Positions 3,196-56,179 of a stretch of DNA of 64,000 nt are shown here, piece by piece. The translations under genes were made by a program, and so were the position numbers. Each line of letters begins with the position of its first letter. The first letter of the stretch is position 1. The DNA lies in assembly GCF_963921235.1 (NCBI RefSeq), contig NW_026948178.1, positions 372,001 to 436,000 on the forward strand, written 5' to 3'. The notes under the pieces are model-generated. The model was not told the origin of the DNA, did no database searches, and saw nothing but the letters and a program-made list of their open reading frames with translations. The stretch comes from Mobula hypostoma. Lineage: Eukaryota.

Positions 3196-3239
3196 AACAG
3201 CACACAAGGTTTGATTCAGATCTGAGCAGAGTCCAGATT

Positions 3240-3356: not shown

Positions 3357-3408
3357 ATGTCGGGACGGCCCTTCGCAGCGCTCCTTCTGTGTCTCTGCAT
3401 AACGGCGG
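3357..3408 (+). CDS. Gene A leader (signal peptide) exon MSGRPFAALLLCLCITA(G)
   Basis: ATG 3357, hydrophobic 17-mer, phase-1 donor G|gtgagg. Confidence 0.85.
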
Positions 3409-26290: not shown

Positions 26291-27499
26291 TGGATGTATT
26301 AACCTTGTTCTCCCTCCCCCCACCACCGCCGATCTTCATCTTCTTCCTCAGTCCTGATTACCACTGCTTCTTTCTTTCTTCCATTGTGTGTGAACCCGAC
26401 ATGATGGAGGAGCAGAGCCTACTTTGTAACGATAAGCCACAGGATCTGAACGAACGATATTAAATAGTAATTAACTGAGGACGACTTGGCGACGGTCTGT
26501 AAATAGGAAGAGGATGAAATGGCCGCTTGACCCACCAGTCAGCGAATCAGCTGCAGATCTCATCTTCTGTCTCATTTTGCCTGACCCTCAATCACCTAAC
26601 ATTCAATCATTTATCACCTCCCTACCTTCGAATTGCTGCAATTGGGGGAGGTGCGGGGGCATGAAGGCAGCAGGCAGGCAGTGAGCAATTCATGAACAGC
26701 TGCTTCCCTTCCCTTCGATTTCAAGTCGAAGATCCTCTGTCAGAACTGCTGGACACATGACCCTCCCTCTCCGGTGAAAGCTCATCTAACATATTATTGC
26801 CGCTTTATTGATTCCCCACCTTCCCATTCTGCTTTGCAATGTCGACTTTTGTATCTCCCTTCACAGATGCTGCCCGACCTGCTGAGTGTTTCCAGCAGTT
26901 TATGTTTCTCCCCATTAACGTTATGTTAGCTATACCCCCGGTAACTGGCTCGAAGATCTGTTCGTTCAGTACTTCCAGAGGCTGTATTTTATTCACAATT
27001 TGTTTCTTTCCTTAACTTAGTAAAGTCAGGCTTTCACTGCTCGCCATTCTGTCTTCTGAGAAACACATCTACTTCTCAAAACATCAGGAATTTCGCTCGA
27101 CAATACGTCGTGACGTCAACTGGAGCGGCTACTGTGAAGAACGGCTTTGAGTGATCCTGCTCACAAGCATGAACAGTTTGTCCCTCGGGTACTGAAGCAG
27201 ATAAACCGACATGGCACTCCGTAATTTTAACCGAATACTTCTACCTGCACTTTAATTCTCTATACTCTGGGAAACATGAAATACTATTCGCCGTAGACTT
27301 AAATGTAGATATCAAATTTCCGGCAAACTGACTTCTAAATAAATCACTCCAGACCCTCCATGGTATCTGCAACTCGGCTCCATATTTTTAACCTCTGGTA
27401 ACAGAAGTCGACAGAGGACCACAGCGTGAAAATTACAAAATTGCAAAAAAAAACTTGGACGTTTACGTTTAAGTCGTCGCTATCAACAGGAACATTTAT

Positions 27500-27727
27500 T
27501 TAGGCGCAAGCTGATGGTTACAGAAAGGCTGCTGTGTTGACAAGTATAATTCCGACTGTCAACGTTGATAAATCACTCGACGGTGATGCCCCGTCCTGTC
27601 CACTGATCAATTGCTCCATTGCGCCATCTATAGTCAGTATCGGGGACTGAACAAGTTAATTTCTGGCATGTGACAGTGTCTACGACAACCGGCCACTGCG
27701 GTTGAATCCTGATGTTGTTTGATCCAT
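27500..27727 (-). pseudogene. Inverted B-type IgC pseudo-exon
   Basis: Minus strand: ttccag|xGSNNIRIQPQWPVVVDTVTCQKLTCSVPDTDYRWRNG...VE*FINVDSRNYTCQ; similar to exon 46108; in-frame stop; 3' boundary approximate. Confidence 0.7.
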
Positions 27728-27813
27728 CTGGAACAGAAATACAGATTGTGCACTGTTTCTGTGATCGGAAATAGTGAATGGAAACTTATATAATGAGCGA
27801 CCTGCGTACCTAC

Positions 27814-28079: not shown

Positions 28080-28871
28080 CTGCAAATAGAACTGAAAGAG
28101 GAATGGAATTATTCCTTTCTACTGCAACTCAGTCATATCAGCTGGGACTCTCACACCAAGTTACAATCGTGGCCGACGTATTAACTTGAATAGCAAACAA
28201 ATTGGAGTTTATGAAAAGGAGTTCCCGGCTATAATTCTATGGAAGCATGGAGAAGATGCGTTTTATTTTGTCGGCCTCTTTTTTTTCTCTCTGCCTGCTT
28301 AATTGAATTTGATTTAGGATTGGTTTGTTCAGTATGTCCAGTGGCTGAAATTCATTCATAAATGGATCGATTCCTTCACTTCGTGTAGTCACGTCCGCAC
28401 TGCTCGGAGGTCTGTACTCTGAGAAACAGATCAAAACTCAGAGCTTCACTGCACAGTCGGTGGTGATTCCAAATGAAGCTGCCGGTGTGAAAGAGAAGCG
28501 CGGGGCAATCCTACTTACAAGCACGGGGAAGGAATGTCCCCGTGTGACACAGTCAGATAAACCGGCGTGGTTCTCCATTATTTTAAATGAAGAGTTGAAA
28601 TGCTTTGGGAAGCATGAGAGCTTATCCGCTGTAGACTTAAATGAAGATCACCGGAAATTTGACATAAACATGTCCGGGATCTTGACTTAAACCCTTTGAG
28701 GAGCTCCAGTATATCTGTTACCCTGTTCCACCTCCCCTGTCCCTGATAAACAGTTTTTTTTTCTTACGACTAAGGTATACAGAAAAGAAAAACGCGAAAA
28801 CTGCAATATAAAGTTGCTGAGAAGTTGAAGCGTTGGTTGGAAGCGGAATATCGACAGAAACTTCCATTTGC

Positions 28872-29129
28872 CCTGTTCAGTGATCTTTGCAGAAAGGCCG
28901 TTGTTTTCCATGGTTATTCTGTTCTCAACCTGGCAAGTATAATTTCTACATTCAACGTTGAGTACTGACTCGTTGACGTAGCCCTGTCCTGTCTGCACAT
29001 AGTTTGTCCCATTGCGCCATCTATCGTCAGCATTGGGAACTCACTGGGCAGAACCAATTAATTTCAGGGTTGTAACGATATCTGCCACAGGGAGACTCTG
29101 AAGCTGAATCGTGAAGTTGTCTGGCCCAT
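28872..29129 (-). pseudogene. Second inverted B-type IgC pseudo-exon
   Basis: xGPDNFTIQLQSLPVADIVTTLKLIGSAQ*VPNADDRWRNG...RNYTCQVENRIT; acceptor AG lost, in-frame stop. Confidence 0.7.
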
Positions 29130-29429
29130 TTTCAACAGAAATCGAGATCGTATGCTGAATCTGTATTGAGTAATACCGAACGTACACCTTCAACTGTCGT
29201 ATGGAAGCCAGACCAGCTCTCTCTGTCAATAACACAGTCGTTATTTGCCAATTAAAATGATCTGCAAAATACAGACCCGATCTGTCCTTCCGCACGCTGT
29301 GGTGTGGATTGGTGAGTTAATCGTCTCGTTTTTTCTTCAAGCGAACGTAGCTACAAAATAAACAAACCAACTTACAGACAAAGCACATAAATGAGGAAAT
29401 AGATGACAAAATTGAATGAAGGAATATTG

Positions 29430-33777: not shown

Positions 33778-33879
33778 GTGATAGAAACTCACTTTGAGAT
33801 CATTGTCGGATTCAACACAGCAGCAGATATTTGTAGAACAACACACAAGGTTTGATTCAGATCTGAGCAGAGTCCAGAT

Positions 33880-33997
33880 TCTCTGATCCAATCAGCGCTG
33901 CCGCCTGTGACGTCAGCATCCAATTATCTGACGCGCAAACCCGGAAGTGCGGCTCAGTCTCCGAGTGTAACAGAGATCGGCGCTGCTCTCTGTCGGG
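33880..33997 (+). promoter_or_regulatory. Promoter of upstream leader-N cassette (CCAAT, CRE, ETS)
   Basis: Near-identical copy of 3240-3356. Confidence 0.65.
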
Positions 33998-34049
33998 ATG
34001 TCGGGACTGCCCTTCGCAGCGCTCCTTCTGTGTCTCTGCATAACAGCCG
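33998..34049 (+). CDS. Leader exon of upstream cassette MSGLPFAALLLCLCITA(G)
   Basis: ATG 33998; donor G|gtaagg. Confidence 0.8.
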
Positions 34050-34251
34050 GTAAGGATCACTCTCTCTAACCAGTAGTGATCGTATAATCAACTGAACGAC
34101 GGGTAGTTAGGTGAATGAAGGTGACTTTATAATTATCGACCGTACTGAGCTAAGAACGGATCCCTGGTATCTGTACAGACTGAGTTAAGTGCAGTTTCTC
34201 ACGACTATCTGCGTCGGTCGCTTTTTCCTCATATGATTTTCTCGTTCTTAG

Positions 34252-34569
34252 GTCAGTCCCAGCAGTTTACTATTACCGTTGAGCACAGCCAGATAAATGT
34301 CCCCGTTGGGGGTGATGCGCTTTTTTCAGTGCGGCCGTCGTCCAAGGTCAGAAGTGGAGACTGGTCTGTTAATGGGATTTTAGCCGTCTGGTGGATCGAT
34401 CAGACCGTGTCTGTTGACAATGTTTACAAACCGCGGGCAGAGTTATTCACCTCCAATGGGTCGCTTCTGCTGAAATCGGTGAACGTGCGGGACAGCGGGG
34501 AATACCGTGTGAATATGGTTCCAGTCAGTGGCTCCCAAACCTCAGCGACCATCACTCTGCGTGTTATTG
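34252..34569 (+). CDS. IgV N-domain exon N2 (upstream cassette of gene B)
   Basis: Intact 318-nt exon, ttag/gtaagt; no constant exons of its own before the next cassette. Confidence 0.85.
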
Positions 34570-35047
34570 GTAAGTGAGACAGAGTTATACACAGTCATGC
34601 GATCTCGGACTGTAAATTTCATTTTATTCCTGTGGTGAAAGAATACAATATAACCATTACGGTATCGCAGAACCTGGACTCCAGTGAACTCTGCCAGACC
34701 TACTTTCGGACTGTTCAGTTCTCACTGTTGTGCGTGGCTGTTTATCGCCGTTTCTGTTCACTTGCCTGTGCCGTATGTCAGTTCGGTCTTTAACTCTATC
34801 AAGTAACTTTTTTTTGCTGTATTATACTATATTTTTGAAAACGGACTGTTTTTCAAGCAGCTGGAAATAATCAGTCGTAATCATCCACCTGAAAGTTTAA
34901 ATATGTTCCCCTCCCCAGTGCCGCCCACAAGTGAATGACAGTATATTGACAGCATTCTGTAGTTTTATCTCTGATCTGTGCATCTGTAGTATTTTGCTTC
35001 TTCCTGTAGTATACCTGTAGTATTTTTGCTTCTTTTTGCTTCAAAAG

Positions 35048-37932
35048 TCTTCTGAGGTGTATATATTTCAATGCTAGGAGTAATGCGGGGAAGGCGGGTG
35101 AGTTGAGAGCGTGGATTGACACGTGGAATTATGATATTATATCAATTAGTGAAACTTGGCTACAGGAGGGGCAGGACTGGCAGCTTAATATTCCAGGGTT
35201 CCGATGTTTCAGATGGGATCGAGGTAGAGGAATGAAAGGTGGGGGATTAGCATTGCTTGTTAGGGAAAATATTACAGCAGTTGTCAGGCTGGACAGATTA
35301 GAGGGCTTGTCTACTGAGTCTTTATGGGTGGAGCTGGGAAACAGGAAAGGTATGGCCACATTAGTGGGATTGTATTACAGAACACCCAATAGTCAATGAG
35401 AATTGGAAGAGCAAATCTGCAGAGAGATAGCAGGCAACTGCAGGAAACATAAAGTTCTGGTGGTAGGGGATTTTAATTTTCCATATATTGATTGGTTCTC
35501 CCATACCTTTAGAGATCTAGATGGTTTAGAGTTTGTAAAATGTATTCAGGAAAGTTTTCTAAATCAATATATAGAGGGACCAACTGGAGGGGATGCAATA
35601 TTGGATCTCCTGTTAGGAAACGAGTTAGGACAAGTGACAGAAGTCTGTGTAGGGGAGCACTTTGGTTCCAGTGATCATAACACCATTAAATTCAACTTGA
35701 TCATGGACAAGGATAGATCTGGTCCTAGGGTAGAGGTTCTTAACTGGAAGAAGGCCAGAATTGAAAAAAATGAGAAAGGATCTAAAAAGCGTGGTTTGGG
35801 ACAGGTTGTTCTCTGGCAAGGACGTGATCGGTAGGTGGGAAGCCTTCAAAGGAGAAATTCTGAGACTGCAGAATTTGTATGTTCCTGTCAGGATTAAAGG
35901 CAAAGTGAATAGGAATAAGGAACCTTTGTTCTTAAGGGATATTGCAACTCTGATAAAGAAGAAGAGGGAGTTGTATGACATGTATAAGAAACAGAGAGTA
36001 AATAAGGTGCTTGAGGAGTATAAGAAGTGCAAGAAAATACTTCAGAAAGTAATCAGGAGGGTAAAAGAAGACATGAGGTTGCATTGGCAGTCAAAGTGAA
36101 GGATAATCCAAAGAGCTTTTACAGGTATATTAAGAGCAAAAGGATTGTAAGGGATGAAATTGGTCCTCTTGAAGTTCAGAGTGGTCGGCTATGTGCGGAA
36201 CCAAAGGAAATGGGGGAGATATTAAATATCTTTTGCTTCTGTATTTACTAAGGAAACTGGCATGAAGTCTTTGGAATTAAGGGAAACAAGTAATGAGATC
36301 ATGGAGACTGTACAGATCGAAAAGGAGGAGGTCCTTGCTGTCGTGAGGAAAATTAAAGTGGATAAATCCCCGGGTCCTGACAGGGTGTTCCCTCGGACCT
36401 TGCAGGAGACTAGTCTTGAAATTGCAGGGGCCCTGGCAGAAATATTTAAAAAGTCGCTGTCTCTTCGTGAGGTGCTGGAGAGTTGGAGAGTGGCTCCTGT
36501 TGTTCCGTTGTTTGAAAAAGGATCGAAAAGTAATCCGGGAAATTATAGGCCAGTAAATTTAACGTCGATAGTAGGTAAGTTATTGGAGAGAGTACCAAAA
36601 GACAGAATCTACAAGCATTTGGATAGACAGGGACAAATTAGGGAGAGTCAACATGGCTTTGTGCGTGGTAGGTCATGTTTGACCAATGTATTGGAGTTTT
36701 TCGAGGAGGTTACCAGGAAAGTGGATGAAGGGAAGGCAGTGGATATTGTCTACATGGACTTCAGTAAGGCCTTTGACAAGGTCCCGCATGGGAGGTTCTT
36801 AAGGAAAATTCAGTCGCTAGGTATACATGGAGAGGTGGTAAATTGGATTAGACATTGGCTCAATGGAAAAAGCCAAAGAGTGGTAGTAGAGAATTGCTTC
36901 ACCGAGTGGAGGCCTGTGACTAGTGGTATGCTACAGGTATCAGTGCTGGGTCCCTTGTTATTTGTCATCTATATCAATGATTTGGATAATAATGTGGTAA
37001 ATTGGATCAGCAAATTTGCAGATGATACTAAGATTTGAGGTGTAGTAGACAGTGAGGAAAGTTTTCAGAGCCTGCAGAAGGACTTGGACCAGCTGGAAAA
37101 ATGGGCTGAAAATTGGCAGATGGAGTATAATACAGACAAGTGTGAGGTATTGCACGTTGGAAGGACAAACCAAGGTAGAACAAACAGGGTTAATGGTAAG
37201 GCACTGAGGAGTGCAGTGGAACAGAGGGATCTGGGAAAACAGATGCAAAATTCCCTCAAAGTGGCGTTACAGGTAGATAGGGTCGTAAAGTGAGCTTTTG
37301 GTACATTGGCCTTTATTAATTGAAGTATTGAGTATTAGAGCTGGATTGTTATGATGAGGTTGTACAAGGCATTGGTGAGGCCGAATCTGGAGTATTGTGT
37401 TCAGTTTTGGTCACCAAATTACAGGAAGTATATAAATAAGGTTGAAAGAGTGCAGAGAAGGTTTACAAGAATGTTGCCGGGACTTGAGAATCTCTGTTAC
37501 AGAGAAAGGTTGAAAATGTTATGACTTTATTCCCTGGAGCGTAGAAGAATGAGGGGAGATTTGATAGAGGTATATAAAATTATGATGGGTATTGTAAGAG
37601 TGAATGCAAGCAGGCTTTTTCCACTGAGGCAAGGGGAGAAAAAAAAAAGGACATGGGTTAAGGGTGAGGGGGGAAAAGTTTAAAGGGAACATTAGTGGGG
37701 CTTCTTAACACAGAGAGTGGTGGGAGTATGGAATGAGCTGCCAGACGAGGTGGTAAATGCGGGATCTTTTTTAACATTTAAGAATAAATTGGACAGATAC
37801 ATGGACGGGATGTTTATGCAGTGATATGGACCGTGTGCAGGTCAGTGGGACTAGGCAGACAATGGTTCGGCACAGCCAATAAGGGCCAAAAAGCTTGTTT
37901 CTGTGCTGTAGTTTCTATGGTTTCTATGGTTT
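35048..37932 (+). mobile_element. CR1 LINE, duplicate of 311-3195
   Basis: Same disabling mutations as the first copy. Confidence 0.95.
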
Positions 37933-37976
37933 AACAGCACACAAGGTTTGATTCAGATCTGAGCAGAGTCCAGATT

Positions 37977-38093
37977 CTCTGATCCAATCAGCGCTGCCGC
38001 TTGTGACGTCAGCATCCAATTATCTGACGCGCAAACCCGGAAGTGCGGCTCAGTCTCCGAGTGTAACAGAGATCGGCGCTGCTCTCTGTCGGG
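37977..38093 (+). promoter_or_regulatory. Promoter of gene B proximal cassette (CCAAT, CRE, ETS)
   Basis: Near-identical copy of 3240-3356. Confidence 0.65.
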
Positions 38094-38145
38094 ATGTCGG
38101 GACTGCCCTTCGCAGCGCTCCTTCTGTGTCTCTGCATAACGGCGG
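38094..38145 (+). CDS. Gene B leader exon MSGLPFAALLLCLCITA(G)
   Basis: ATG 38094; donor G|gtgagg. Confidence 0.85.
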
Positions 38146-41100
38146 GTGAGGATCACTCTCTCTAACCAGTAGTGATCGTATCATCAACAGAACGACGGGT
38201 AGTTAGGTGAATGAAGGTGATTTTATAATTATCGACCGTACTGAGCTGAGAACCGATCCCTGGTATCTGTACAGACTGAGTTAAGTGCAGTTTCTCACGA
38301 CTATCTGCGTCGGTCGCTTTTCCCTCATATGATTTTCTCTTTCTCAGGTGAGTCCCAGCAGTTTACTATTACCGTTGAGCACAGCCAGATAAATGTCCCC
38401 GTTGGGGGTGATGCGCTTTTTTCAGTACGGCCGTCGTCCATGGTCAGCAGGGGAGACTGGTCTGTTAATGGGATTTTAGCCGTCTGGTGGATCGATCAGA
38501 CCGTGTCTGTTGACAATGTTTACAAAACGCGGGCAGAGTTATTCACCTCCAATGGGTCGCTTCTGCTGAAATCGGTGAAAGTGCGGGACAGCGGGGAATA
38601 CCGTGTGAATATGATTCCAGTCAGTGGCTCCCAAAGCTCAGCGACCATCACTCTGCGTGTTATTGGTAAGTGAGACAGAGTTATACACAGTCATGCGATC
38701 TCGGACTGTAAATTTCATTTTATTCCTGTGGTGAAAGAATACAATATAACCATTACGGTATCGCAGAACCTGGACTCCAGTGAACTCTGCCAGACCTATT
38801 TTCGGACTGTTCAGTTCTCACTGTTTTGCGTGGCTGTGTATCGCCGTTTCTGTTTGCAGGTTCTCCGCACTTGTCTTTGCCGAATGTCAGTTCAGCTTTT
38901 AAGTCTACCAAATAACATTTTTTGCTGTATTATACTGTATTTTTTTTTAAACGGACTGTTTTTCAAGTCAGCTGGAAACGATCAGTTCTAAATCATCCAC
39001 CTGAAAGTTTAACGATGCGCCCCTCCCCGGTGCCGCCCACATGTCTATGAAAGTATATTGACAGCATTCTGTAGTTTTATCTCTCATCTGTGCATCGGTA
39101 GTATTTTACTTTAAGCGGAATGTATATTCTTGGAGCCATCATTTCAGCACAGTACGATACGCGTGATACATGGTATTAGTATTTTGACAGAAGCCGTATC
39201 CTGGCCCAACACCACATCAAATGCCGCTGGCTCTGTAGAACACAATGACACGGTCAGTGTCGCTTGCTCGGCAAGAGGGGGACATGCTCCTTATTCGTGG
39301 TTAATGAAAAGCAAGACAGTTAGCTCTGCCGTTAGGATTACGGTGAGCAGCACATCGACTGAACGTTTACTGCCAGTGTCGCTGTATTAGACCATGTGTC
39401 AAACATTGATTCTATTTTCAAAGGAAACTTCGAGGCTCCGACACCGAGCCGGGAGCACCCCCTCTGCCGAGTGGCTTATGTTCACATGTTCCACGGAACA
39501 ATTATGCTATAACCAAGTGCAATTCCGTTTATTCTGCTTTGATATTTGCTGCAGTGGGTAACCTCTGAGAGGAGAATATGTTGCTCACCGTCCCCTTAGT
39601 GAGTTCATTCCAGAGAAATCCATCAAACCAGAACGTGCTGCAGACGGGACGGGGTCAAACACGATTTGCCCCTTTTCGGCTGTATCCGACCCCTGTGGTC
39701 CTTTTACAATAATCTGGACAGCGTTGCATATTTGTCGATTTATCCCCATATTTTTATTTACGTGTGAGCATTTAACAATGCAAACCAACTATCCAGCTCA
39801 GTACACGAAATAATTTCTTCTAGGATACCGTTTGTATTATCCCCAGAGGTGGACAAAAAGTGTCTAACTTGCGTATCCATGAACACAGAGTTTATTTTTA
39901 TTTTTTTCAGTTATCAGCATCTGGTAAGGTGGAGTCCGGTGCTGAGTAAGATATTCTGATGTGTGTCATTACGCAGTACTGGGCTTGCAACGCATACTTT
40001 TAAGACGAACCCCAAATTATATCTAAAAGTTGCTGGTGAACGCAGGAGGCCAGGCGGCATCTCTAGGAAGAGGTGCAGTCGACGTTTCAGGCCGAGACCC
40101 TTCGTCAGGACTAACTGAAAGAAGAGTGAGTAAGGGATTTGAAAGTTGGAGCAGGAGGGGTGGGGGCCATGGAACTGAAAATCATCGAATTTTAAGTTCC
40201 CTGGCGCCCACCGCTTTATTTTCACCATGGATGTCCAGTCCCTATATACTTCCATCCCCCATCAGGAAGGTCTCAAAGCTCTACGCTTCTTGTTGGTTTC
40301 CAGCCCTAATCAGTTCCCCTCTACCACCACCCTGCTCCGTCTAGCGGAATTAGTCCTTACTCTTAATAATTTCTCCTTTGGCTCCTCCCACTTCCTCCAA
40401 ACTAAAGGTGTAGCTATGGGCACCCGTATGGGTCCTAGCTCTGCCTGCCTTTTTGTTGGCTTTGTGGAACAATCTATGTTCCGTGTCTATTCTGCTATCT
40501 GTCCCCCACTTTTCCTTCGCTACATCGATGACTGCATTGGCGCTGTTTCCTGCAGGCATGCAGAGCGCGTTGACTTTATTAACTTTGCCTCCAACTTTCA
40601 CCCTGCCCTCAAGTTTACCTGGTCCATTTCCGACACCTCCCTCCCCTTTCTAGATCTTTCTGTCTCTGTCTCTGGAGACAGCTTATCCACTGATGTCTAC
40701 TATAAGCCTACTGACTCTCACAGCTATCTGGACTATTCCTCTTCTCACCCTGTCTCTTGCAAAAACGCCATCCCCATCTCGCAATTCCTCCGTCTCCGCC
40801 GCATCTGCTCTCAGGATGAGGCTTTTCATTCTAGGAAGAGGGAGATGTCTTCCTTTTTTAAAGAAAGGGGCTTCCCTCCCTCCACTATCAACTCTGCTCT
40901 TAAAAGCATACTCCCCCATTTCACGTACATCTGGTCTCACTCCATCCTCCCGCCACCCCACTAGGAATAGGGTTCCCCTGGTCCTCACCTACCACCCCAC
41001 CAGCCTCCGGGTCCAACATATTATTCTCCATAACTTCCGCCACCTCCAACGGGATCCCACCACTAAGCACATCTATCGCTCCACCAATTTCTCTGCATTC

Positions 41101-44100
41101 CGCAGAGATCGCTCCCTACACAACTCCCTTGCCCATTCGTTCCCCCTCCCATCCCTCCCCACTGATCTCCCTCCTGGCACTTATCCGTGTAAGCGGAACA
41201 AGTGTTACACATGCCCTTACACTTCCTCCCTTACCACCATTCAGGGCCCCAAACAGTCCTTCCAGGTGAGGCATCACTTTACCTGTGAGTCGACTGGGGT
41301 GATAGACTGCGTCCGGTGCTTCCGATCTGGCCTCTTATATATTGCCGCAGACTGGGAGTCGTTTGCTGAACATCTACGCTCTGTCCGCCAGAGAAAGCAG
41401 GATCTCCCAGTGGCCAGACATTTTAATTCCACATCCCATTCACATTCTGACAGTTCTATCCACGGCCTCCTCTACTGTAAAGATGAAGCCACACTCAGGT
41501 TGGAGGAACAACACCTTATATTCCGACTGGGTAGCCTCCAACCTGATGGCATGAACATCGACTTCTCTAACTACCGCTAATGCCCCACCTCCCCCTCGTA
41601 CCCCACTGTTACTTATTTTTATACACACATTATTTCTCTCACTCTCCTTTTTCTCCCTCTGTCCCTCTGAATATACCCCTTGCTCATCCTCTGGATCCTC
41701 CCCCCCCCCCCCCGCCACCTCCTTGCCTTTCTTCCCGGACCTCCTGTCCCATGATCCTCTCGTATCCCTTTTGCCTATCACCTGTCCAGCTCTTGGCTCT
41801 ATCCCTTCCCCTCCTGTCTTCTCCTATCATTTTGGATCCCCCCTCCCCCTCCCACTTTCAAATCCCTTACTCACTCTTCCTTCAGTTAGTCCTGACGTAG
41901 GGTCTCGGCCTGAAACGTCGACTGCACCTCTTCATAGAGATGCTGCCTGGCCTGCTGCGTTCACCAGCAACTTTTATGTGTGTTGGTTGAATTTCCAGCA
42001 TCTGCAGAATTCCTGTTGTTCCCAAATTATATCTGTTCCGTCTCGTGTGATAACAATTTCCATTGGCTCCAAAACATTAACATTAACACTGAACTTTGGA
42101 TCATTTCAGTAGCGATAGATTCTCTGGATGATATTAGAAACTGTTGTCAGTATTTCTGTTCTGTGTTTGCCAGTGATTATGCATCATCTTTCTCATTGCC
42201 AAGTGACCCTTGCCTGAAGTGAATCATTTCCTACTTCCTCCTTCACGAGCTCCATTGATTTGCCATTTTTGTCGGGTTTGTTTTTGACATATGCAATTTC
42301 AAAACGCCATGGCGTCGCAGATTAAAACAGAGAGACAATATGGTTAATCTTCAACATCATGATCATAATGTAAGTCCTTCATCCTGAAGCCGCAAGCGGT
42401 CCAGAAAATGATTCACAATCGTCCAACTGGAATGGGAGTCTCTTGAACTTAGGAGGGTGGTTCGACCGAGACCTTACTCTCCGAGCGTGGCAGGTCGTGG
42501 CATGATCATACAGAAGTTTCTAAAATCACGAAAGGCACAAGTAATTTCGATGTTCACCTATTTTAGCAGGCTACAGTGGTCTAAAATAAAGAACTTAGAT
42601 TCATAGCTAGTGAGGTAAAGTAAAAGGGACAGCCTTATGCACAATGTGTTCCGCAAATGCTAGGAACTGCCAAAGGGAATGCTGGAGATGCGTGGAAATA
42701 TAATGTTCAGAAATCATGTAGACAACAGAAGTATATAACAGTTTATACATGGTCCAGTTGCAGGCAAATGGGAATAGTTCAACGAAATAGCTTGGTCAGC
42801 ATGAACGAGATCGGCAGAAGGGTCCTTGAGGCGATGAATGATATGGCTACACCTGAAGGGAGAGAATTTCAACATACTGTCTCTGAGTAAGCGATGAATA
42901 AAGAATGAAGTCACTTGTCTCAATTCTAGTGTCTCCATCTCAATCCTTAACTCAATCAAGTGGAATTATTTGTTAATGTTTACTTATTATGGAGAATAAT
43001 GATTTTATTTTAAGATTCAGAACAGAAGCCATAAACTGCCGGATTCTATTCCTGGGTCGTTCATTAACTTCTCCTGTCTGTTTTAACAGAACCTGTTTCC
43101 AATGTCACCGTAACATCTAATGCCACCAGACTGATAGAGTACAATGACACCGTCACTCTAACCTGCCTCGCAAGAGGCACGGCAGTCTCTTACCTGTGGC
43201 TTGAGGAGAATAGCATGATAATTCCTGGCGGCAGGATTGAACTAAGTGCGGACAACAGCACACTTATTGTTTCTGGAGTGCTACGGACAGACGGAACTTT
43301 CACCTGCAGAGCAAACAACCTGATTATTGAAATCACAAGCGCTCCGTTTTCTCTCGATGTCAACTGTAAGCACCCCGAGAGTTCCGTAGTAACACATAAT
43401 ATTACAGGTCGCGCTAGATACAGGGTTCCGGGAGTGTGTGATTATATCATTGAACGTTACATCAATGGACTAACACCGGAACAACTGAACAGTTAATTGG
43501 GAGACGGATCGGGGTCTATCGATATGCTTATGAGTGATGTGCATTGTATCCAGGTTGGAGAAGGAGACGGGTTTGGGGATAGGAGGTAACTGTGCATAGT
43601 TTCTTAAAACGTGTTTAATCTGACACTGTGACCTGACTCCCCTATTTACCGCGGGTGGCTTCCAGACCAATGCCGCCGTCGTTGTGTGGGAGCACTTTCT
43701 CTGCTGGTGGGCTGTTCTTCCTCTCGCGGCAAGAGGAATCCGTTTTGTCCGTTTCATTTCAGACGGACCGGATCGTCCACATATCATCACTGAACCGGAC
43801 TCTACTCTTCACGTTGCCGGAAGCAGCGTATCGTTAACATGTTTCACACTGTCGCACCCAGACGCTGAACTGAATTGGCAACTGAACGGTGCCCATCTCC
43901 AAAGTGGGCAGCTTCTCATCCTCGACAACATCTCTGTGAGCCAGACGGGAAGGTATACTTGTGAGGCTTATAACATGCTTACAATGAAGAAAAATTCCTC
44001 AACCAGGGAAATTGATGTTTACGGTAGGTAGTCTGCTCCTCCCTTTGTTGAGGTCGTATATAGCGGCGTTGGTGCAGCCAGGGCAGTGTAATTGAACTGA

Positions 44101-47100
44101 ATGCCTAAACCCGATTAGAATATTGACTAACAACCTTAATCCACAACGGTGAACATTGATGAAACAGAGTATTGATTAAGAGGCAAATCGGAATTGTTTT
44201 GACTTGTCGATTAAACTACAAATATTTACTTGCTGCAGTTAGGACCATAAGGCCATAAGGCATAGGCAGGAGATTTAGACAACTGGGCAATGGAGTCTGC
44301 TCCGCCATTTCATCGTGGTTAATCTAATATTCCTCACAGTTCCAATTACTGTACAAGCCTTCTCTGCATATGCATTGATGCACTGACCAATCAAGAATCT
44401 ATCATCCTCTCTTTACACTTACGGAAGGACATGGCCTCTACAGCTTCCCATGAAACATAATTTCCAGATTGACCACCCTCAGGCGAAATAAATTCCCTTT
44501 CGTCTCCGTTCTAAAAGGACGCCACTCTATTTAAAAGGTGTGCCTTTTGGTTTTAAACTCACCGCCATGGGAAACATCCTCTCCACATCCACTCTAATAA
44601 GGCCTTTCACAATTCGATAGGTCTCATGACGTCACCCCATATTCTTCTGATTTCCAGTCGGCAGAGGCCCAAAACCATCAAACACTCTGCTTATGAAAAG
44701 TTGTTCAATCCTGTTCATTCCACGAACTCACCACTCTCTGCGTAAAAAAAAACAAAAAAAAAACTTACGCCTGAGATCTCCTCTGTACCTACTCGCCAGC
44801 ACCTTAACCCTGCGCGCTCCTGTGGCAGCCATTTCAGCCCTGGAAAAATTCTCTGATTATCCACAGGATCGATTGCTCTCATCATCTGAGACTCCTCTAT
44901 CAGGTCACCTCTCATCCTCCGTCACTCCAAGGAGAAAAGGCCGAGTTTACTCCACCTATTCTCATAACGGGTTCTCCACGATCCAGGCAATATCCTTGTA
45001 AATCTCATCTGCCCCCTTTCTATGGCGGTCACATCCCTTCTATAGTGAAACAACCAGAACTAAACACAGCACCGCAAGTGGGGTCTGAAGAGGAACCTAT
45101 ATAGCTGCAACATTACCTCCCGGCTTCTAAATTCGATTCCACGATTAATGAAGGCCAATACAATGCATTCTCAACCACAGAGGTGACCTGAGCAGCTGCT
45201 TTGAGCGTCCTATCGTCTCGGACCCCAAGATCCCCCTGATCCTCCACACTGCCAAGAGTCTTACCATTAATACCGCATTCTGCCTTCATATTTGATCTAC
45301 CAAAATGAACCACTTCACGCTTATCTGTGTTGAACTCCGTCTGCCAGTTCTCCGCACAGTTTTCCATCCTACCAATGCTCTTCTGTAACTTCCGACAGCT
45401 CTCCACACTATCCACAACTCCCCCAACCTTTGTGACATCAGCTAACTTACTAACCCAACCCTCCGCTTCCTCATCCAGGTCATGTATGAACATCACGTAG
45501 AGTAAGAGTCCCAGAACGGATCCCCGAGGCACCTCACTGGTCACCGACCTCCAGGCAGAATATGAACCGTCTACGAACACGCTTTGTCTCATGTGCGCAA
45601 GCAGGTTCTGGATCCACGAAGCATGTACATGTTGCAGATCAAAGCAAGTGTAAAAGTGTTTGCATTTAATTGTATTTACAGAGCCGGTGACCGGTGTTAC
45701 TGTGGTGGCCAATGATTCCACTCCCCTGGAAAATCTTGATACCATCGCACTGAGTTGTGACGCGTCGGGCCCTGTTCAGGCCCGGGCATGGTTCAAGGAT
45801 AACCAACCCATCCAGGAAAACAACAGAATATTTACATCATCCGGGAAGGCGAAACTGATTATAATCAGTGTTTACAGAAACGACGCAGGGACGTACAAGT
45901 GCATCGCCAGCAACTCTTTCAGCAGTGGCTCTGGAGAGACCTACGTGCAAGTTTACTGTAAGTACTCAGTAAATCAACCGCGTTCATTTGTATCCGATAT
46001 TACATTTATCAAGATATGTAATCATTGTGGGGCGACCACATAAGAACGGAATATCCCGGATCCAGCGAGATATCACTCTAATCAGCATTTTTTTTTTTTC
46101 ATTTTAGATGGACCAGAGATGATCAGAATTGTACCGGAGCGTCCAGTTGTGTCCAATACTGTGTCAAACCTGACATTAACTTGCTTTGCTCTGTCAGTCC
46201 CCTGGGGCATATATGTATGGTACAACGGGAACAATCTCCTGCAGACAGGGCAGGAACTCCGTCTTTTGTCAGCCAGAATGGTTGACGTTGGGAGTTATAC
46301 ATGTCGGGTTACTAACCGCGTAACCAACAGGAACAGTAACCTTACTGTCCATGTCACCGCAGAAGGTGAGTGAATGTGTCTCTTATTCGTCCATGTAAAC
46401 CCGATGGTCAAAGATCCAAACCATTTCCCTCTCACGCCCTCCTCACGCCGTACCTTCATTCCCCCTTCCAAATTGCTTATCAGAGAGAATAATAATTGAT
46501 TTAAAGAGATTAAATATCGAGAGCAGCGACCAGAACTTTCGGGAGTTTCTAAAAAAAAAGATGAGTTTTCGCCATGTACAATATATGCTTGTTTTCTGTG
46601 TTAGCACCAAAAACAGATGACAATATCACCCTCACCGCCGGCGCGATCGTGGGCATTGTACTTGGTTTACTTGGCATGGGCCTGATCGGGGGAGTCACTG
46701 GATGGTTCATCGCAAGGAAAACGAGCGGGTAAACTCATCGCTCTCCGAATCTCGTTTCTACCTTTAATTATTTCATATAAACATAGAAACGTAGAAACCT
46801 ACAACACAAAACAGGCCTATCGGCCCGTGAAGAAATTACTAGACATCCCCATATCCCTCTATTTTACTGAGCTTCATGTACCTATCTAAAAGCCCCTTAA
46901 AAGACCAGATCTTATCCGCCTCCAACACCATTGCCGGCAGCCCCTTCCACGCACTCACCACACTCTGAGTAAAAAAAACTTACCTGTAATATCTCCTCTG
47001 TACCTATTCCCCAACACCTTAAACTTGTGTTCACTTGTTTCAACCATTTCAGCCTTGAGAAAGAGCCTCTGACTATCCACACGGTCAGTGCCTCTCATCA

Positions 47101-50100
47101 TCTTATCAGGTCACCTCTCATCCTCCGTCGCTCTAAGGAGAAAAGGCAGAGTTCACTCAAACTATTCTCATAAGGCATCCTCCCTATTCCAGCCAACATC
47201 CTTGTACACCTCCTCTGCACCCTTTCTGTGGCTTCCACATCCTTCCTCTAGTGAGGCGACCAGAACTGAGCACAGTACTCCAAGTTTGGTTTGCCCAGGG
47301 TTCTATATAGCTGCAACATTACCACTCGGGTCCTAAATTCAATTCCACGACTAATGAAGGTCAATACACCGTGTGCCTTCTTAACAACAGTGTCAAGCGG
47401 CGTAGCTGCTTTGAGCGTCCTATGGACTCGGACCCCAAGATCCCTCTGATCCTCCACACTGCCAAGAGTCTTACCATTAATACTATATTCTGCCATCAGA
47501 TTTGCCCTACCAAAACCAGATTTTTTGAGGATTTCGGCAGAACCGACTTCTGCCCGGATCCGGGATCATCTGTGGGCAGAATCAGCATTCCGCCTTCACG
47601 GTGACGTTCTTTGTCTGAAATCTGAACATCTGTCTGAAAGAGGCCTGTGTTCAGCAAGATTTCTGTAAACAGCATATATGTCAAAAAGGGCCAAAGCAAT
47701 TTTCTTTCCTTTACGAATTATGGTCACTGTTGTTGTGATCGAGTAGGGCTGGAATCCGGCGTCCAATAACCAGAACAGTATCAAGGAATAACAAGAGAGT
47801 ATCCAATGCAATTGTAGGAGCCGTTCTCATTCAGTGTATCCGTGCAGGAAAGTGACTTCCTGCCGAATCCATGTTTTGACCTTTGTTTCTGTTTATTCAG
47901 GATCAAAGATCCACCACAATCCAAATCCGGAAGGAAGAGTGAGTGAACTGCATTTGAAATTTTCTAACTTGGAGCCAATGGAAATCTTAACATTGATTTT
48001 AATTTGGGAGCTCATAGTGCACGGCATTGACAGAGTGGATGTGACAAAGTTGTTTCCCATGATGGGGGAGTCTAGTACGAGAGGGCATGACTTAAGGATT
48101 GAATGGAGCCGATTCAGAACAGAAATACGAAGATTTTTTTTTAGTCTGAGGGTGGCGAATCTATGGAATTTGTTGCCACGGGCAGCAGTGGAGGCCAAAT
48201 CATTGGGGAGTGGGACAAAAGGGGAGAATGGATCAGTTCATGGAAAAATGGCGGAGCAGACTCGATGGGCCGAATGGCCGTCTTCTGCTCCTTTGTCCTA
48301 TGGTCTTATGGAATATGGAGGTTTTCATCAGAGCGAATGGTCACGAATTACGCGACTTTTGTCGTGGAGTTTTCCATTTATATAAGGTGAAATTTTCTGC
48401 TCAAGATTAGAATATCAGCGGAGAGATGGGATAGCAGTTTATACAACGTAATTTCTCTTCATATTGATCAATATCGGTCCTCACTTCCTGGTTCTGGCGA
48501 TTGGTGGGACGGAAGCTCATGCTATCAATGGCGTTTTGTTTTGGGCCGGATTGACGTCTGCTGTGTTCAACAACGGCTCCTGCCGCTCTGCACCGTTGTC
48601 ACATATCTGTTTGGTTCCCACAGGCACCTTGGATACAAATACCGTGAACACACCGCAAAACTATGAGAATTTCCCCAGGAATGAACAGGTAGGGTGGTCA
48701 TGATCTCCGTCATGGTTTTGCCCAGGGACGATAAGAACACGAGTAATGCGACCGGTAGCGTCCATCGGGCCTTTCCGCTCTGATTGGTCATTTAATAAGA
48801 TCATGGTTCATCGATGTCGGATCTCATTGTCAGTTAATGGAGAAACAACACATCATATTCTGCAAAGTAAACCCAATCCTGATGGTATGAACATCGACCT
48901 TATCCCACCGGTATTTCTTTTCACCTCCGTCTTCTTCTATTGTCACTCTGGCCTCTTATCCCTTCTCCTTATCTGCCCATCATCTCCCCCTGGTGCCCCT
49001 CCTTCTTCCCTTTCTCCTATGGCACACTCGCCTCTGCAATCCGACTACTTTTTCTTCATCTTCCCTTGTCCCACCCGTCAGGCCTCACCTATCAGCTCCC
49101 AGCCAGGCCCCCTTCCCCTCGCCACCATTTTGTTCAGGCGTCTTCCTGCCTCCTTCTCAGCCCAGTAGATGTGTATCGTCACAAAACCTAAACGGATTAA
49201 TAAATTCTATTAATGCTGCCTGACACTCTGAGTTCCTTCGGCATTTTGTGCGTGTTGCTCTGATTTTCCAGCACCTGCAGAATTTCCACAGTATACCCCA
49301 GAATCTATTATACCTGTAAGATGCAAAAACATATCCGACCTTTGCTGCAACATTTTTCATGAAAGAGTCTTTTATAACGTCCGATCAATGTGAGTAACGC
49401 CGGAGACTCCACAATCACTCACAGAGTGAAGCCGTGGTCAGGTTTGCACATTTCTGTCTCTGATCAACAGTGATCTCTGTGAGCGTTCAAGAGAAACAGC
49501 AGCTTACGGTGAACAGCCTGAGGCCACGAGTCCGCATTCTGATCCAGACTTACCTGTCAAGATGAATGGCTTTCAATCCGCCGAGTGAACGTTCTGATCC
49601 AGACAAATCTCTCAGAAGGAATGGTTTTAAAGGCAAATTACTCCTCAAATAATATTCACCACGCTCCATGGTGACTGAATATTGACGAATGGTTTAATGA
49701 CATTCAGTAACATTGCTGACGTTGGGGAAAATGTATATTGCACTCGCTCTGAATCAGAAACTCGCAGAGCATCGAACGGTGACCGATACAATTTCGCTCC
49801 AAGCAGCAACGACTGTGACCATTGATACCCTCCGGGTTTATATGTGCAGAGTCAGAATACAATTGTTGTTCACTTGTTTAAACGTCATGATAAAAAAACG
49901 CCTTTTTCTCTTTGCAGGGCGCAAGTCACAATGCACAAGACGAAAACTCCACTTACATGGTATATGCGTCAATCTCTCATTGAAGTAATTGTTTCCATTT
50001 CATTGAGTAAGAAATAGACCCTGAAGTGAGACGTTCCATAGACTGCAGTGTTGAGCACAACATTAATATGTCAGTGTCAGGATACGAAAGTGATTGCGGT

Positions 50101-52222
50101 CACTATAATAAGGGGCAGTGTCATGGGAAGCTGAAAGGGAGGAAGGTAGAAGAGTCAACTGGACTAAATGGACGAGATGAGCTACACACTAGGGTTCTGA
50201 AATGGGCCGCTGAAGAGGGAGTGGAGGAATTAGCACTGATATTCCAAGCCTCACGTCACTATTGAATTGTTTTGAAGGACTGCAAAGTTGCAAATATCAC
50301 TACGCTCTTTACGAGGAAAGGGGCTGAACTGACAGGATGGGGTAAGACTGCACGATAAAAGAGGAGGTTTGAGGATAGATGGAGGCACGAGATAAAACGG
50401 GTGGCAGGCAGGAATGTTTTGCCCCTGCGAAAATCCTGCCTGGCAATGCTGTTGGAATTCTTGGAGGAAATCACATGTGCGATCGACAAAAGAGAGTCAG
50501 AGGGAGTTGTGCACTTGGATTTTCAGACGGCCTTTGACAAGGTAACGCACATCAGGCCACTGAACATAAGAGCGCATGGTATTACATGGCAGAAGACAGC
50601 ATGCACAGAGGTTTGTCCGACCGGAAGGAAGGGAAGAGTGGGATTGAATGGGATAGTTGTGTGTTGGGCTGCCGAATTGGGCTACCAGTGCGGTTCTGCT
50701 GGTGTCGGTGTTCGGCCGCTTCTTCCCGTGTTTCCAGTCAATGAGATCGACAAATGAGCTGGTGGATGTGTGGTCAGGCTTGGGGACGATGCAAAGATAG
50801 TTGTAGGGGGTGTGCAGGACTTAGGAAGCTGCGGGTCTGCAGAAGGAGTTGGAACAATGAGGGAAACAGAGAAACAACTGCAACTAAAATCCAGTGCATG
50901 GAAGCATTAGTTCGTGCTCTTTGACAGGCGTGAAGCCGGAGCCTATTTTCCGAAAGGGATTGAACTTACAAATCGGAGGTGAAAATGCCCTATGCAGTTG
51001 TAGTGCAAGGTTGCTGAAAGTCGAACTTTCAGGTTGCGTTAGTGATAAGGAAGGAAGGCAAGTGCATTGTTGTCCATCATTTTGACAGGTATCGAACACA
51101 AACGTGAAAGATATTGAAGGGATTTGTCAGAGAAGACTCAGAATATTTTGAAGAGTGTTGAAGACCTTTTCTTAGAAAGGACAGGGTGGCTTTGGAGGAA
51201 ATTAACGAGAATTATCTAAGGAGTGAAAGCGTTTAACGACTCTGAGTTCTCTACCCACTGTAGTTTGGCAGAATGACTTATTTGAAACATACTTATCGCG
51301 GGAGTGTCTCAGACCAAAGGGCACAGCCTGAGAGTACAATGAACGCCCTTTGGAACGGAGAGATAAGAAGGAATATCTTTAGACAGAGCGTGTTTTATCT
51401 GCGCTATTTATTGTCGCTTATGGCTGTGGAGGCCAATGTACTCTGTTATGAAGCGTTGATCGCGCCGAATGTTGCAGAGTGAAGGCGGGTGAATGGGGTT
51501 GAGAGTGACAGTAAATCGGACATGATAAAATGAGGGAGCGGGCTCCATGTCAGGAATTGATTAAACCTTCCCCTGCGTCTTCTCCTGGAGACTCATGGAA
51601 GTCTCGTTCCTCCCTCAATTTTCAATAACTACGTGTCTCAGAAAATCCTCTTTCCATCATGTTCTGGCTGATCCGCGGTTCTTTCAAAGCGAGATCGTTA
51701 AATACGGGCAGGTCCTTTCCAATATTCCTCCAATTCTCCTCTACCATGTCCTGATTTTGATAATATTTTTTGTTAATGCTGACGATTTCCTCACGTTAAC
51801 AGGAACTTAATCTGGGCGATCGATCTGTTTACAGTGATCTGAAGAGGTAAGTGAACAGAACATCCGGCTCTCGATGTAAAATGTTACCTACAAAAGAAAC
51901 ATATCGATAATGTTCAAGACTGTGAGTCGTGCAGGATATGTGATCGTTCCCGTGCACATATCACATTGTGATTAGCAATATACATAGATGTAACAGTGTA
52001 CGACTGGAATCAGGAGGCGTTGAGAGGCGATATATTGATAATCAAACGAACAATTTTCGTGGGGCCGTGGTCATATGAAACATGTAAATTGTATGCAAGG
52101 TTGCTTTGTCACGATGTTTGACACGGATTGAGAAAACACCGCTCGTCTTTCTCCTCACCAACAGCAACTCCTTCGGGTTGCCTGCGGAGTCAACATGAGT
52201 TGTGTATTGTTTCCGCAGGTGA
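38094..52222 (+). CDS. CEACAM-like receptor gene B (leader, N, A1-B1-A2-B2 IgC2, TM, ITAM tail; 585 aa; spliced)
   Basis: Exons 38094-38145, 38348-38665, 43090-43365, 43763-44023, 45682-45957, 46108-46365, 46605-46728, 47901-47938, 48624-48688, 49918-49959, 51803-51846, 52219-52222. GT-AG, consistent phases, 1758 nt open frame. Cys-less IgV followed by alternating EPV.../YGP... IgC2 exons is the CEACAM pattern. Confidence 0.88.
38348..38665 (+). CDS. Gene B IgV N-domain exon N3
   Basis: ctcag/gtaagt, 318 nt, Cys-less V-set, DSGEY. Confidence 0.9.
39191..39390 (+). pseudogene. Degenerate A-type IgC exon in gene B intron 2
   Basis: Copy of 4452-4651; retains the C-strand Trp (YSWL) but ends at the same stop. 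Confidence 0.7.
40020..42020 (+). mobile_element. Penelope-like element (RT plus GIY-YIG remnant) with inverted partial terminal repeat
   Basis: RT YIDD ORF 40227-40964; GVIDCVRC..SGLLYI (GIY-YIG-like) ...PDGMNIDF; 40020-40165 is an inverted copy of about 41840-41985. Confidence 0.9.
43090..43365 (+). CDS. Gene B IgC2 exon A1
   Basis: EPVSNVTVTSN...TLTC...YLW...TFTCRANN...LDVN; ttaacag/gtaagc; 276 nt. Confidence 0.9.
43763..44023 (+). CDS. Gene B IgC2 exon B1
   Basis: YGPDRPHI...SLTC...LNWQLNG...TGRYTCEAYN; tttcag/gtaggt; 261 nt. Confidence 0.9.
44245..45620 (-). mobile_element. Two adjacent CR1 fragments in gene B intron 4
   Basis: Minus ORFs with VPRGSVLG, KLADV, MRGDLIE; (CCATAAG)n tail at 44245. 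Confidence 0.85.
45682..45957 (+). CDS. Gene B IgC2 exon A2
   Basis: EPVTGVTV...LSCDASG...WFKDN...DAGTYKCIASN; tttacag/gtaagt; 276 nt. Confidence 0.9.
46108..46365 (+). CDS. Gene B IgC2 exon B2
   Basis: YGPEMIRI...LTLTC...YVWYNG...GSYTCRVTN; ttttag/gtgagt; 258 nt. Confidence 0.9.
46605..46728 (+). CDS. Gene B transmembrane exon
   Basis: (A)PKTDDNITLTAGAIVGIVLGLLGMGLIGGVTGWFIARKTS(G); ttag/gtaaac. Confidence 0.88.
46780..47510 (-). mobile_element. CR1 3' fragment
   Basis: DLGVRVHRTLK...LEYCAQFWSPH on minus; tail at 46780. Confidence 0.85.
47901..47938 (+). CDS. Gene B cytoplasmic exon 1 (IKDPPQSKSGRK)
   Basis: ttattcag/gtgagt; 18 nt shorter than the gene A exon, in frame. Confidence 0.8.
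48025..48310 (+). mobile_element. Short CR1 3' end, gene B-specific
   Basis: DRVDVTKLFP...TRGHDLRI; absent at the matching gene A position (about 12310). Confidence 0.75.
48624..48688 (+). CDS. Gene B cytoplasmic exon 2 (STLDTNTVNTPQNYENFPRNEQ)
   Basis: cccacag/gtaggg; 65 nt. Confidence 0.8.
49918..49959 (+). CDS. Gene B cytoplasmic exon 3 (GASHNAQDENSTYM)
   Basis: tttgcag/gtatat; 42 nt. Confidence 0.8.
50110..51570 (+). mobile_element. Old degraded CR1 (5' part shared with gene A about 17220-17440)
   Basis: KSCLAMLLEFLEEIT...HLDFQTAFDKV. Confidence 0.75.
51803..51846 (+). CDS. Gene B cytoplasmic exon 4 (ELNLGDRSVYSDLKR)
   Basis: ttaacag/gtaagt; 44 nt; terminal exon cag|G TGA at 52219-52222. 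Confidence 0.8.
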
Positions 52223-53029
52223 CGTCACTGGTGAATGGAAGAGGATGGTCGGGACGTGGACGGACACATCAGAAAGACAACCATCCAGGATGTTTACTGA
52301 AAACCTCTCTGACTATTTCTTTGCCATTCTTAATTCATATCTCCGTTAGATTTCTTCTGCGCGCTCACAGCTTGACGCCGGAGACATCACTGAAGATTTT
52401 GACTGATTTGCATCATAGAAGCTGAGTTCTCTCACCTCAAGCCAGACTCCTACATCCGATACTTGGCACCGTCACACTGCCACAGGCAGCTGCCCTCTCG
52501 ACATTTTGGTGCGATATACTCTCTATAAACTCTTCATCCACATCATGGACAGGTGTTTTTTGAAGTTTCCTGCTACCAAACAATAGATTTCGCTCACTGA
52601 ATACCGCGTCAGCTTCCGAGTATTCCCGTCCCACCTTCACGAAGTGTCACGGAGGCAGGAGCTCATTCGGGCTGAGTGGTGGCGATACGAGCACGGGCAG
52701 GAGAAGTGATTTCCCAATGATTTGAAGATACATACTCAGCGTTAGCGCTTGGTAAATGACTAGCAAATCAACATTGTTTATTTGTTCTTCATTTTCGATC
52801 AAGGAGTAATGTAAAGAATGATAAGGCATTGCTGTGAGCAAAGAATTATCAAATCCTGGCCTGGACCATGAACGTGAAAAGAGCATTGATATCGCGATGA
52901 CATAAGAACATAAGAAATAGGAGAAGGAGTTATCCATCCGGCCCACTGAGCCTGCCCCGCCATTCAATCACATCAAGACCTTTTGCCATCCCTGATTCGG
53001 AGTACTAGGAGTTGCTGTGTGTTTCATTT

Positions 53030-56044: not shown

Positions 56045-56179
56045 NNNNNNNNNNNNNNNNNNNNNNNNNNNNNNNNNNNNNNNNNNNNNNNNNNNNNNNN
56101 NNNNNNNNNNNNNNNNNNNNNNNNNNNNNNNNNNNNNNNNNNNNNNNNNNNNNNNNNNNNNNNNNNNNNNNNNNNNNNN
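56045..56179. other. Assembly gap (135 N)
   Basis: Run of N. Confidence 1.

Follow-up and report, generated by a model that had tools for sequence, protein, structure and literature searches.

Genes A and B of the devil ray Mobula hypostoma are very probably tandem members of an expanded CEACAM cluster, each encoding a classical ITAM that is split between two short cytoplasmic exons and assembled by splicing, and the signal that they send is expected to be activating or endocytic and to oppose that of a CEACAM1-like partner. The split layout of the ITAM is a standard, published feature of activating CEACAM-family receptors and is not special in itself, and the splice-assembled motif of these two genes is already contained in public gene models. 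What the genes add is a chondrichthyan example, with exon coordinates and transcript support, of activating (ITAM) and inhibitory (ITSM/ITIM) CEACAM partners at the base of the jawed vertebrates.

The locus and its two receptor genes

The window, i.e., the whole 64-kb stretch of DNA that was analysed, consists of these Ig genes and repeats only. It is a repeat-rich tandem duplication, in which positions 1-5025 equal positions 34738-39767 at 99%. LINE fragments are abundant across the window, and a truncated Ig pseudo-exon lies after each N exon (4376-4648 and 39115-39387). With Pfam, neither the truncated Ig pseudo-exons (4376-4648) nor the ORFs of the minus strand at 28690-29316 gave a match.

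Gene A is the M. hypostoma RefSeq protein that we label P0182 (XP_062895386.1, LOC134341460, 233 aa); when this protein was placed on the window by tblastn, all of the tail exons that aligned (TM, Cyt1, Cyt3 and Cyt4) were 100% identical. The gene encodes a minimal receptor, consisting of a leader, an N domain, the TM and the tail, with IgC exons absent. Its exons are as follows.

3610-3927, plus strand: N (IgV-like) exon, 98% to P0182
8902-9022, plus strand: TM exon, 100% to P0182
12169-12224, plus strand: Cyt1, 56 nt
12633-12697, plus strand: Cyt2, carries IYENF
16941-16982, plus strand: Cyt3, encodes GTRDNADDGSSTYM and ends in STYM
17650-17693, plus strand: Cyt4, encodes GLVLEDRSVYSDLK and adds AG
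18067-18070, plus strand: start of the last exon, in which A completes AGA (Arg) and TGA follows

All exons of gene A have open frames and canonical splice sites, and the support for its junctions is the matching RefSeq gene model P0182 alone. With exon borders marked by slashes, its full tail reads ARKIGG/IKDIPQSKHDRSVNSGRK/STPDTNTVNPSQIYENFMGIEQ/GTRDNADDGSSTYM/GLVLEDRSVYSDLKR and then stops.

Gene B encodes an ectodomain with one or two N domains and as many as four IgC2 domains, followed by the TM and the tail, and is represented in RefSeq by P0181, P0174, P0177 and P0180 (XP_062895393-97), which are CEACAM5/1-like isoforms X1-X5 whose tail exons and IgC exons all match the window by tblastn. 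P0181 and P0174 are 100% identical to gene B over the TM and Cyt1-4. The N exons sit in two leader-plus-N cassettes, and isoform X1 of the gene model unites N1 and N2 in a single protein. The four IgC2 exons score above the cut-offs of Pfam for Ig_2, Ig_3 and I-set. The exons of gene B are listed below.

34252-34569, plus strand: N1, cysteine-free IgV-like exon, 99% to residues 18-125 of P0181
38348-38665, plus strand: N2 exon, 100% to residues 124-229 of P0174
43090-43365, plus strand: A1, IgC2-like exon, phase 1
43763-44023, plus strand: B1, IgC2-like exon, phase 1
45682-45957, plus strand: A2, IgC2-like exon, phase 1
46108-46365, plus strand: B2, IgC2-like exon, phase 1
46605-46728, plus strand: TM exon, membrane span without a charged residue; contigs begin at 46603/46605
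47901-47938, plus strand: Cyt1, 38 nt, from contig joints and direct reading
48624-48688, plus strand: Cyt2, encodes STLDTNTVNTPQNYENFPRNEQ and bears a YxN (Grb2-type) motif, from contig joints and direct reading
49918-49959, plus strand: Cyt3, 42 nt, phase 0/0, encodes GASHNAQDENSTYM, the first half of the ITAM; read directly and from joints 48688>49918 and 49959>51803; 100% match to P0181 and P0174
51803-51846, plus strand: Cyt4, 44 nt, ends in phase 2, encodes ELNLGDRSVYSDLK and adds AG of the final Arg codon; joints 49959>51803 and 51846>52219
52219-52222, plus strand: start of the last exon, in which G completes AGG (Arg) and TGA follows, from contig evidence

The full tail of gene B reads ARKTSG/IKDPPQSKSGRK/STLDTNTVNTPQNYENFPRNEQ/GASHNAQDENSTYM/ELNLGDRSVYSDLKR and then stops. 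Cyt3 is bordered by ...ctctttgcag/GGC...ATG/gtatat, with a peptide that ends in ...STYM, and Cyt4 by ...cgttaacag/GAA...AAGAG/gtaagt. The coordinates and peptides that a preliminary description of this DNA had given for the tail exons proved exact on direct reading of both genes.

Splicing of the gene B tail

Contigs of public runs were placed on positions 46550-52549, which cover gene B only; they come from three runs of one study whose type is given only as "RNA?". In run X1 there are five consecutive GT..AG joints (46728>47901, 47938>48624, 48688>49918, 49959>51803 and 51846>52219), all of them at the predicted borders, with depths of 218-285 at the joints (~285 at 49959>51803) as compared to 15-30 in the introns, i.e., roughly a tenfold difference. 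The first three of these joints recur in run X2 within one 1001-nt contig. The 3' UTR extends to at least 52549 (contig 52217-52549, depth 218). Since the contigs have no differing letters in the tail exons, the transcript is gene B's own. Five canonical joints at about ten times the intron depth have the look of RNA plus some pre-mRNA, the RNA type of the runs being guessed. The preliminary description had proposed that the junctions be confirmed in cDNA, and for gene B all five tail joints are now seen in these RNA-like contigs. The evidence on splicing consists of contigs; joints that skip Cyt3 or Cyt4 were not found among the best-supported 15 of the 28 gene B joints in the contigs.

The assembled motif and its conservation

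When Cyt3 and Cyt4 are joined, both genes encode YxxL-x7-YxxL, and the splice sites are canonical AG/GT everywhere. A phase-0 intron cuts the first YxxL between Y-M and x-L in each gene. The tail phases are likewise the same in the two genes, namely (2)Cyt1(1)Cyt2(0)Cyt3(0)Cyt4, after which the last exon, preceded by a good pyrimidine tract that is kept in both, adds one base and the stop. The earlier view that an ITAM is assembled here by splicing over a phase-0 intron is thus upheld by the exons and phases as read and, in gene B, by the junction 49959>51803 in the contigs.

The gene B motif, N-S-T-Y-M-E-L-NLGDRSV-Y-S-D-L, shows the full classical consensus D/E/N-x-x-Y-x-x-L/I-x7-Y-x-x-L/I. 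That of gene A, S-S-T-Y-M-G-L-VLEDRSV-Y-S-D-L, fits the core and has Ser rather than D/E/N at the -3 position of the first tyrosine. The ITAM core turns up in just 0.1-0.2% of composition-preserving shuffles of the tails. A third tyrosine, outside the ITAM and within a YENF (YxN) site, is present in each tail. The TM, AIVGIVLGLLGMGLIGGVTGWFIA, lacks a charged residue, and the ectodomain comprises one to six Ig domains.

Genes A and B share the 26 nt CGATCTGTTTACAGTGATCTGAAGAG without a difference; Cyt4 as a whole is 84% identical, as compared to 66-68% in its 100-nt flanks. Conservation of Cyt1 and Cyt3 between the two genes is no higher than in their own flanks. Over Cyt3 and Cyt4 together the genes differ by nine non-synonymous and five synonymous codon changes, every one of which falls at a non-motif position.

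Relatives in the sequence databases

Traits of the CEACAM family are present in the ectodomains. The N exons at 3610-3927, 34252-34569 and 38348-38665 encode V-set-like domains that have no cysteine and occupy a phase-1 exon, and gene B has IgC2-like A and B domains with a Cys pair, one phase-1 exon each; gene A, like CEACAM3, has none of the latter. When 1.84 billion representatives were searched with the A1 Ig exon, 1299 proteins came up, the best of which bear the same tail, and these matches include proteins named CEACAM5/6/1-like in Hemitrygon akajei, Hypanus sabinus, M. hypostoma, M. birostris, Amblyraja radiata, Callorhinchus milii and Acipenser, as well as elephant CEACAM1 and other ITIM types. 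The best matches of the A1 exon, the tail and the N domains go by the names CEACAM-like or PSG-like, which come from automatic annotation. A search with the tail only returned 19 ray proteins, the majority named CEACAM-like, and an Atlas search with the N domain returned V-set clusters of a generic kind, the CEA clusters standing at rank 15-16. Gene models for proteins with the N-TM-tail build exist in two Mobula species (233 aa) and in Hemitrygon (232 aa). That these are CEACAM-like receptors of an early-branching jawed vertebrate, as first suggested, is in keeping with their nearest proteins, which are RefSeq CEACAM-like proteins of rays, sharks and chimaera. The CD2/SLAM family, raised by weak Receptor_2B4 matches in Pfam, was rejected, since every named relative is a CEACAM and the tail has the CEACAM layout.

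Rays, skates, sharks, chimaera, sturgeon, gar, frog and alligator have CEACAM-like proteins with the same tail: a YxN site, then S/A-T-Y-x and x-L-x7-Y-x-x-L on the two sides of the split, and a K/R-R end. The ITAM core is present in Mobula, Hemitrygon, Hypanus, Pristis, Narcine, Amblyraja, Cetorhinus, Chiloscyllium, Heterodontus, Callorhinchus, Acipenser, a frog and an alligator, and it is retained in most of the related tails compared, including 14 of the 23 from rays and skates. The shark ITAM tails (Cetorhinus, YTQLNLEDQSIYYSL; Chiloscyllium, YTGLQMQDRSVYSEL; Heterodontus, YMDLKLEDQSIYHDL) were reached by the N-domain search, which also detects an ITAM tail in sawfish and electric ray. Two further M. 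hypostoma proteins, the CEACAM1-like P0026 and P0206, have ITSM tails (TEYAEI, TDYAEV) and an N domain 86% identical to that of gene A. An ITSM-tailed relative with so similar an N domain is, as judged by sequence, the paired-receptor pattern described for CEACAM1/CEACAM3.

Predicted signalling and alternative readings

By analogy with ITAMs in general and with CEACAM3-type receptors, a Src-family kinase would phosphorylate both ITAM tyrosines after ligand binding. The doubly phosphorylated ITAM could then recruit the tandem SH2 domains of the Syk/ZAP-70 kinase, and pYENF might recruit Grb2. The predicted output would be an activating or endocytic signal against an inhibitory CEACAM1-like partner, in a paired or decoy receptor system. 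We infer the activating function of the ray tails from this analogy.

The closest alternative takes human CEACAM3 as its model: the two YxxL modules would chiefly give an endocytic or "ITAM-like" signal, and the uptake of bound particles would go by way of Vav, Nck, PI3K or AP-2-type recognition of YxxPhi and depend on Syk little or not at all. Gene A does have the minimal N-TM-tail build of CEACAM3, and both YxxL modules fit YxxPhi too; moreover, human CEACAM3 signals largely without Syk, and for this reason the downstream route in the ray may differ. We nevertheless regard this alternative as unlikely, if far from negligible, given that the exact 7-residue spacer and both Leu residues, needless for a single endocytic YxxPhi, are retained from chimaera to alligator, and that gene B shows the full classical consensus NxxYxxL-x7-YxxL. 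Much less probable is a tandem ITIM, or a tail switchable between ITAM and ITIM, that would recruit SHP-1/2 and be inhibitory, an alternative named in the preliminary description, which noted that both modules match (S/I/V/L)xYxx(L/V). The match itself holds, since STYMEL (or STYMGL) and SVYSDL do fit (S/I/V/L)xYxx(L/V/I); the -2 Ser of the second tyrosine is also retained in those tails of cartilaginous fish, sturgeon and gar in which this module is seen, and RefSeq models without Cyt3 (P0018) would keep a lone SVYSDL. Nothing beyond the pattern speaks for switching, however. Ser is the weakest ITIM residue at -2, and in other lineages this position is taken by Ala, Pro, Gly or Asp (at the first tyrosine, Ala in skate and chimaera; at the second, Asp or Gly in Xenopus, a second frog and alligator), a replacement across lineages that is contrary to the prediction of a hydrophobic contact at -2. 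The phase-0 split and the x7 spacer are hallmarks of ITAMs, and separate ITSM-tailed paralogues in the same genome take the inhibitory role, all of which makes an inhibitory tail very improbable.

It is also conceivable, at the lowest probability of the readings weighed here, that the motif exists in the DNA and that the genes, or at least gene A, are silent copies or pseudogenes of a repeat-rich cluster. The window is filled with LINEs and has truncated Ig pseudo-exons after its N exons, gene A has lost all of its IgC exons, and the contig support is for gene B only. Against this, gene B is spliced and well covered, the exons of gene A are all open with canonical splice sites, and there are gene models of equal build from two Mobula species and from Hemitrygon. 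The reading that we prefer remains that of tandem CEACAM genes with a classical, activating or endocytic ITAM.

A possible splice switch, and significance

RefSeq isoform models that skip one ITAM half-exon exist in four ray species (P0018, P0183, P0152, P0209 and P0228), and genes A and B are conserved at the start of the last exon. Elasmobranch CEACAM genes might use the splicing of two skippable ITAM mini-exons as a signalling switch, a speculation to which we give only a small chance of being right. Retention of both exons would give the ITAM; skipping of the in-frame 42-nt Cyt3 would leave a single S-V-Y-S-D-L module (ITIM or hemITAM-like); and skipping of the 44-nt Cyt4 would shift the frame into the last exon and yield an ITAM-less tail beginning (M/L/V)TSL.... 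The skipping models are only a mildly new lead, and the locus raises no new question: family, motif and split-exon rule are all in the literature, and RefSeq has the proteins. Its value lies in a motif, YxN site, exon order and phase-0 split that are almost unchanged from ray to frog, which helps with annotation and with tracing the origin of the ITAM exons.

Comparison with known systems

The classical ITAM is always split within its first tyrosine module (PMC4536121), and the split-exon layout has also been published for CEACAM ITAMs (PMC5112662). ITAM-bearing CEACAMs were described "from cartilaginous fish to humans", a range that draws on ESTs of skate (PMC3628338, PMC4079198). The nearest described counterparts of the ray genes are the Xenopus group-2 ITAM Ceacams (Ceacam351, Ceacam387) and opossum CEACAM110 (Zimmermann & Kammerer 2016, PMC5112662), which have a cysteine-free N domain and IgC2 domains as in rays. 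Xenopus tails such as ...PSRVYENIPNTAK/AHPAKEEGPYM/GLQYPSQDTYSELKK and stop, and the (2)(1)(0)(0) phases of opossum CEACAM110, are documented in Additional file 1 of PMC5112662, and the tail phases of both ray genes equal the latter; the ray tails can be aligned to these exon by exon. The Xenopus group-2 genes share with the ray genes the exon order, i.e., a YxN exon, an exon ending in ...Y-M and an exon G/E-L...Y-S-D/E-L-K-R/K followed by the stop, with the phase-0 intron inside the first YxxL, the YM/GL split and the ...YSxLKR end. The ray genes differ from those of Xenopus and opossum by one additional intron, which cuts the last Arg codon just ahead of the stop, and by Ser, not Asp, at -2 of the second tyrosine. 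Because of lineage-specific expansions, orthology between the ray genes and those of Xenopus or opossum is not assignable.

A further close system is that of human CEACAM3 and CEACAM4/19/20. CEACAM3 shares with gene A the minimal build of N domain, TM and tyrosine-motif tail, and a likely pairing with an inhibitory CEACAM1-like receptor of similar N domain. The human motif is ITAM-like and not classical (PMC5112662), whereas the ray motif shows the classical consensus together with an upstream YENF.

The adaptors DAP12 (TYROBP), FcR-gamma and CD3-zeta have the same consensus, coded by two exons that meet inside the first tyrosine module according to the published rule (PMC4536121). DAP12 has the terminus SDVYSDLNTQRPYYK, and its ITAM ends in SDVYSDL (PMC2192947), so that the VYSDL ending given for it in the preliminary description is correct; the likeness to the ray second module is a local one. 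A PDB search with the 25-residue ITAM peptide had as its sole match ITAM1 of CD3-zeta (YNELNLGRREEYDVL, as compared to YMELNLGDRSVYSDL in the ray), a likeness of motif and not homology, with a non-significant E of 0.49. The ITAM adaptors have a tiny ectodomain and an acidic TM residue, whereas the ray ITAM is carried by a ligand-binding Ig receptor with an uncharged TM. The term "DAP12/FcR-gamma-like" is therefore apt for the motif but not for the protein, which is a full Ig receptor, and identity as an adaptor of the DAP12/FcR-gamma type was rejected on account of the uncharged TM and the large ectodomain.

CEACAM1 belongs to the same family, shares the N-A-B-A-B ectodomain, and has a terminal tyrosine module near a basic C-terminus (...YSEVKKK as compared to ...YSDLKR in the ray, each followed by the stop). 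Its last coding exon alone carries both ITIM and ITSM, about 20 residues apart, and in rays tails of this kind are found on other genes (P0026, P0012).

Duplication within the window and the two N cassettes of gene B

Window positions 1-5025 correspond to 34738-39767 at 99% identity, and a shorter unit is present three times, at 3196-4372, 33837-34999 and 37933-39111, with about 94% identity among the copies. This segmental duplication is very recent, and the duplicated segment takes in the N cassette, which encodes the cysteine-free IgV-like domain, together with a LINE that carries endonuclease and reverse-transcriptase frames. In gene B, the stretch 33837-39111 holds two leader-plus-N cassettes with a LINE insertion between them. 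The intron between Cyt3 and Cyt4, the small cytoplasmic exons that each code one ITAM half, also contains a reverse-transcriptase fragment in gene B (about 50359-50754), which is in part missing from gene A. A run of 135 N at 56045-56179 is either masked sequence or an assembly gap. The features discussed here are as follows.

Features of the two genes and the interval between them
about 33998-34054 and 38094-38150, gene B leaders
34252-34569, gene B N1 exon
38348-38665, gene B N2 exon
4376-4648 and 39115-39387, truncated IgC-like pseudo-exons, one after each N exon
27492-27803 and 28852-29148, pair of Ig-like open frames on the minus strand, in the interval from gene A to gene B
18067-18309 (gene A) and 52219-52420 (gene B), start of the last exon, open in frame 0

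In the RefSeq isoform models P0181, P0174 and P0177, N1 is followed immediately by N2 and the protein has two N domains in tandem; other gene B isoform models have a single N domain.

Skipping of ITAM half-exons

Frame 0 of the last exon reads (M/V)TSL(G/V)NGRGW.... In RefSeq isoforms P0183, P0152, P0209 and P0228, from paralogues and other rays, Cyt4 is skipped and the frame continues into the last exon, so that these models read ...STYM followed directly by MTSL... and lose the second ITAM half; model P0018 lacks Cyt3 instead. Neither type of skipping joint is present among the 15 best-supported joints of gene B.

Other Ig-like sequences

The pseudo-exons are about 41-43% identical to one Ig domain of P0026, an M. 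hypostoma CEACAM1-like protein; a strong in-phase donor is absent from both, and Pfam returned a weak match or none. The minus-strand frames, which include ...YTCQVEN..., show 38-42% identity to Ig domains of the same protein and may represent either a pseudogene or part of a third Ig-superfamily gene. Stretches 62-64% identical to the present N domain occur in P0224 and P0226, which are NACHT/LRR (NLRP3-like) gene models from other loci, in Hemitrygon and M. birostris, and in the GPCR-like model P0225; all three may be chimeric or fused gene models adjoining CEACAM-like exons.
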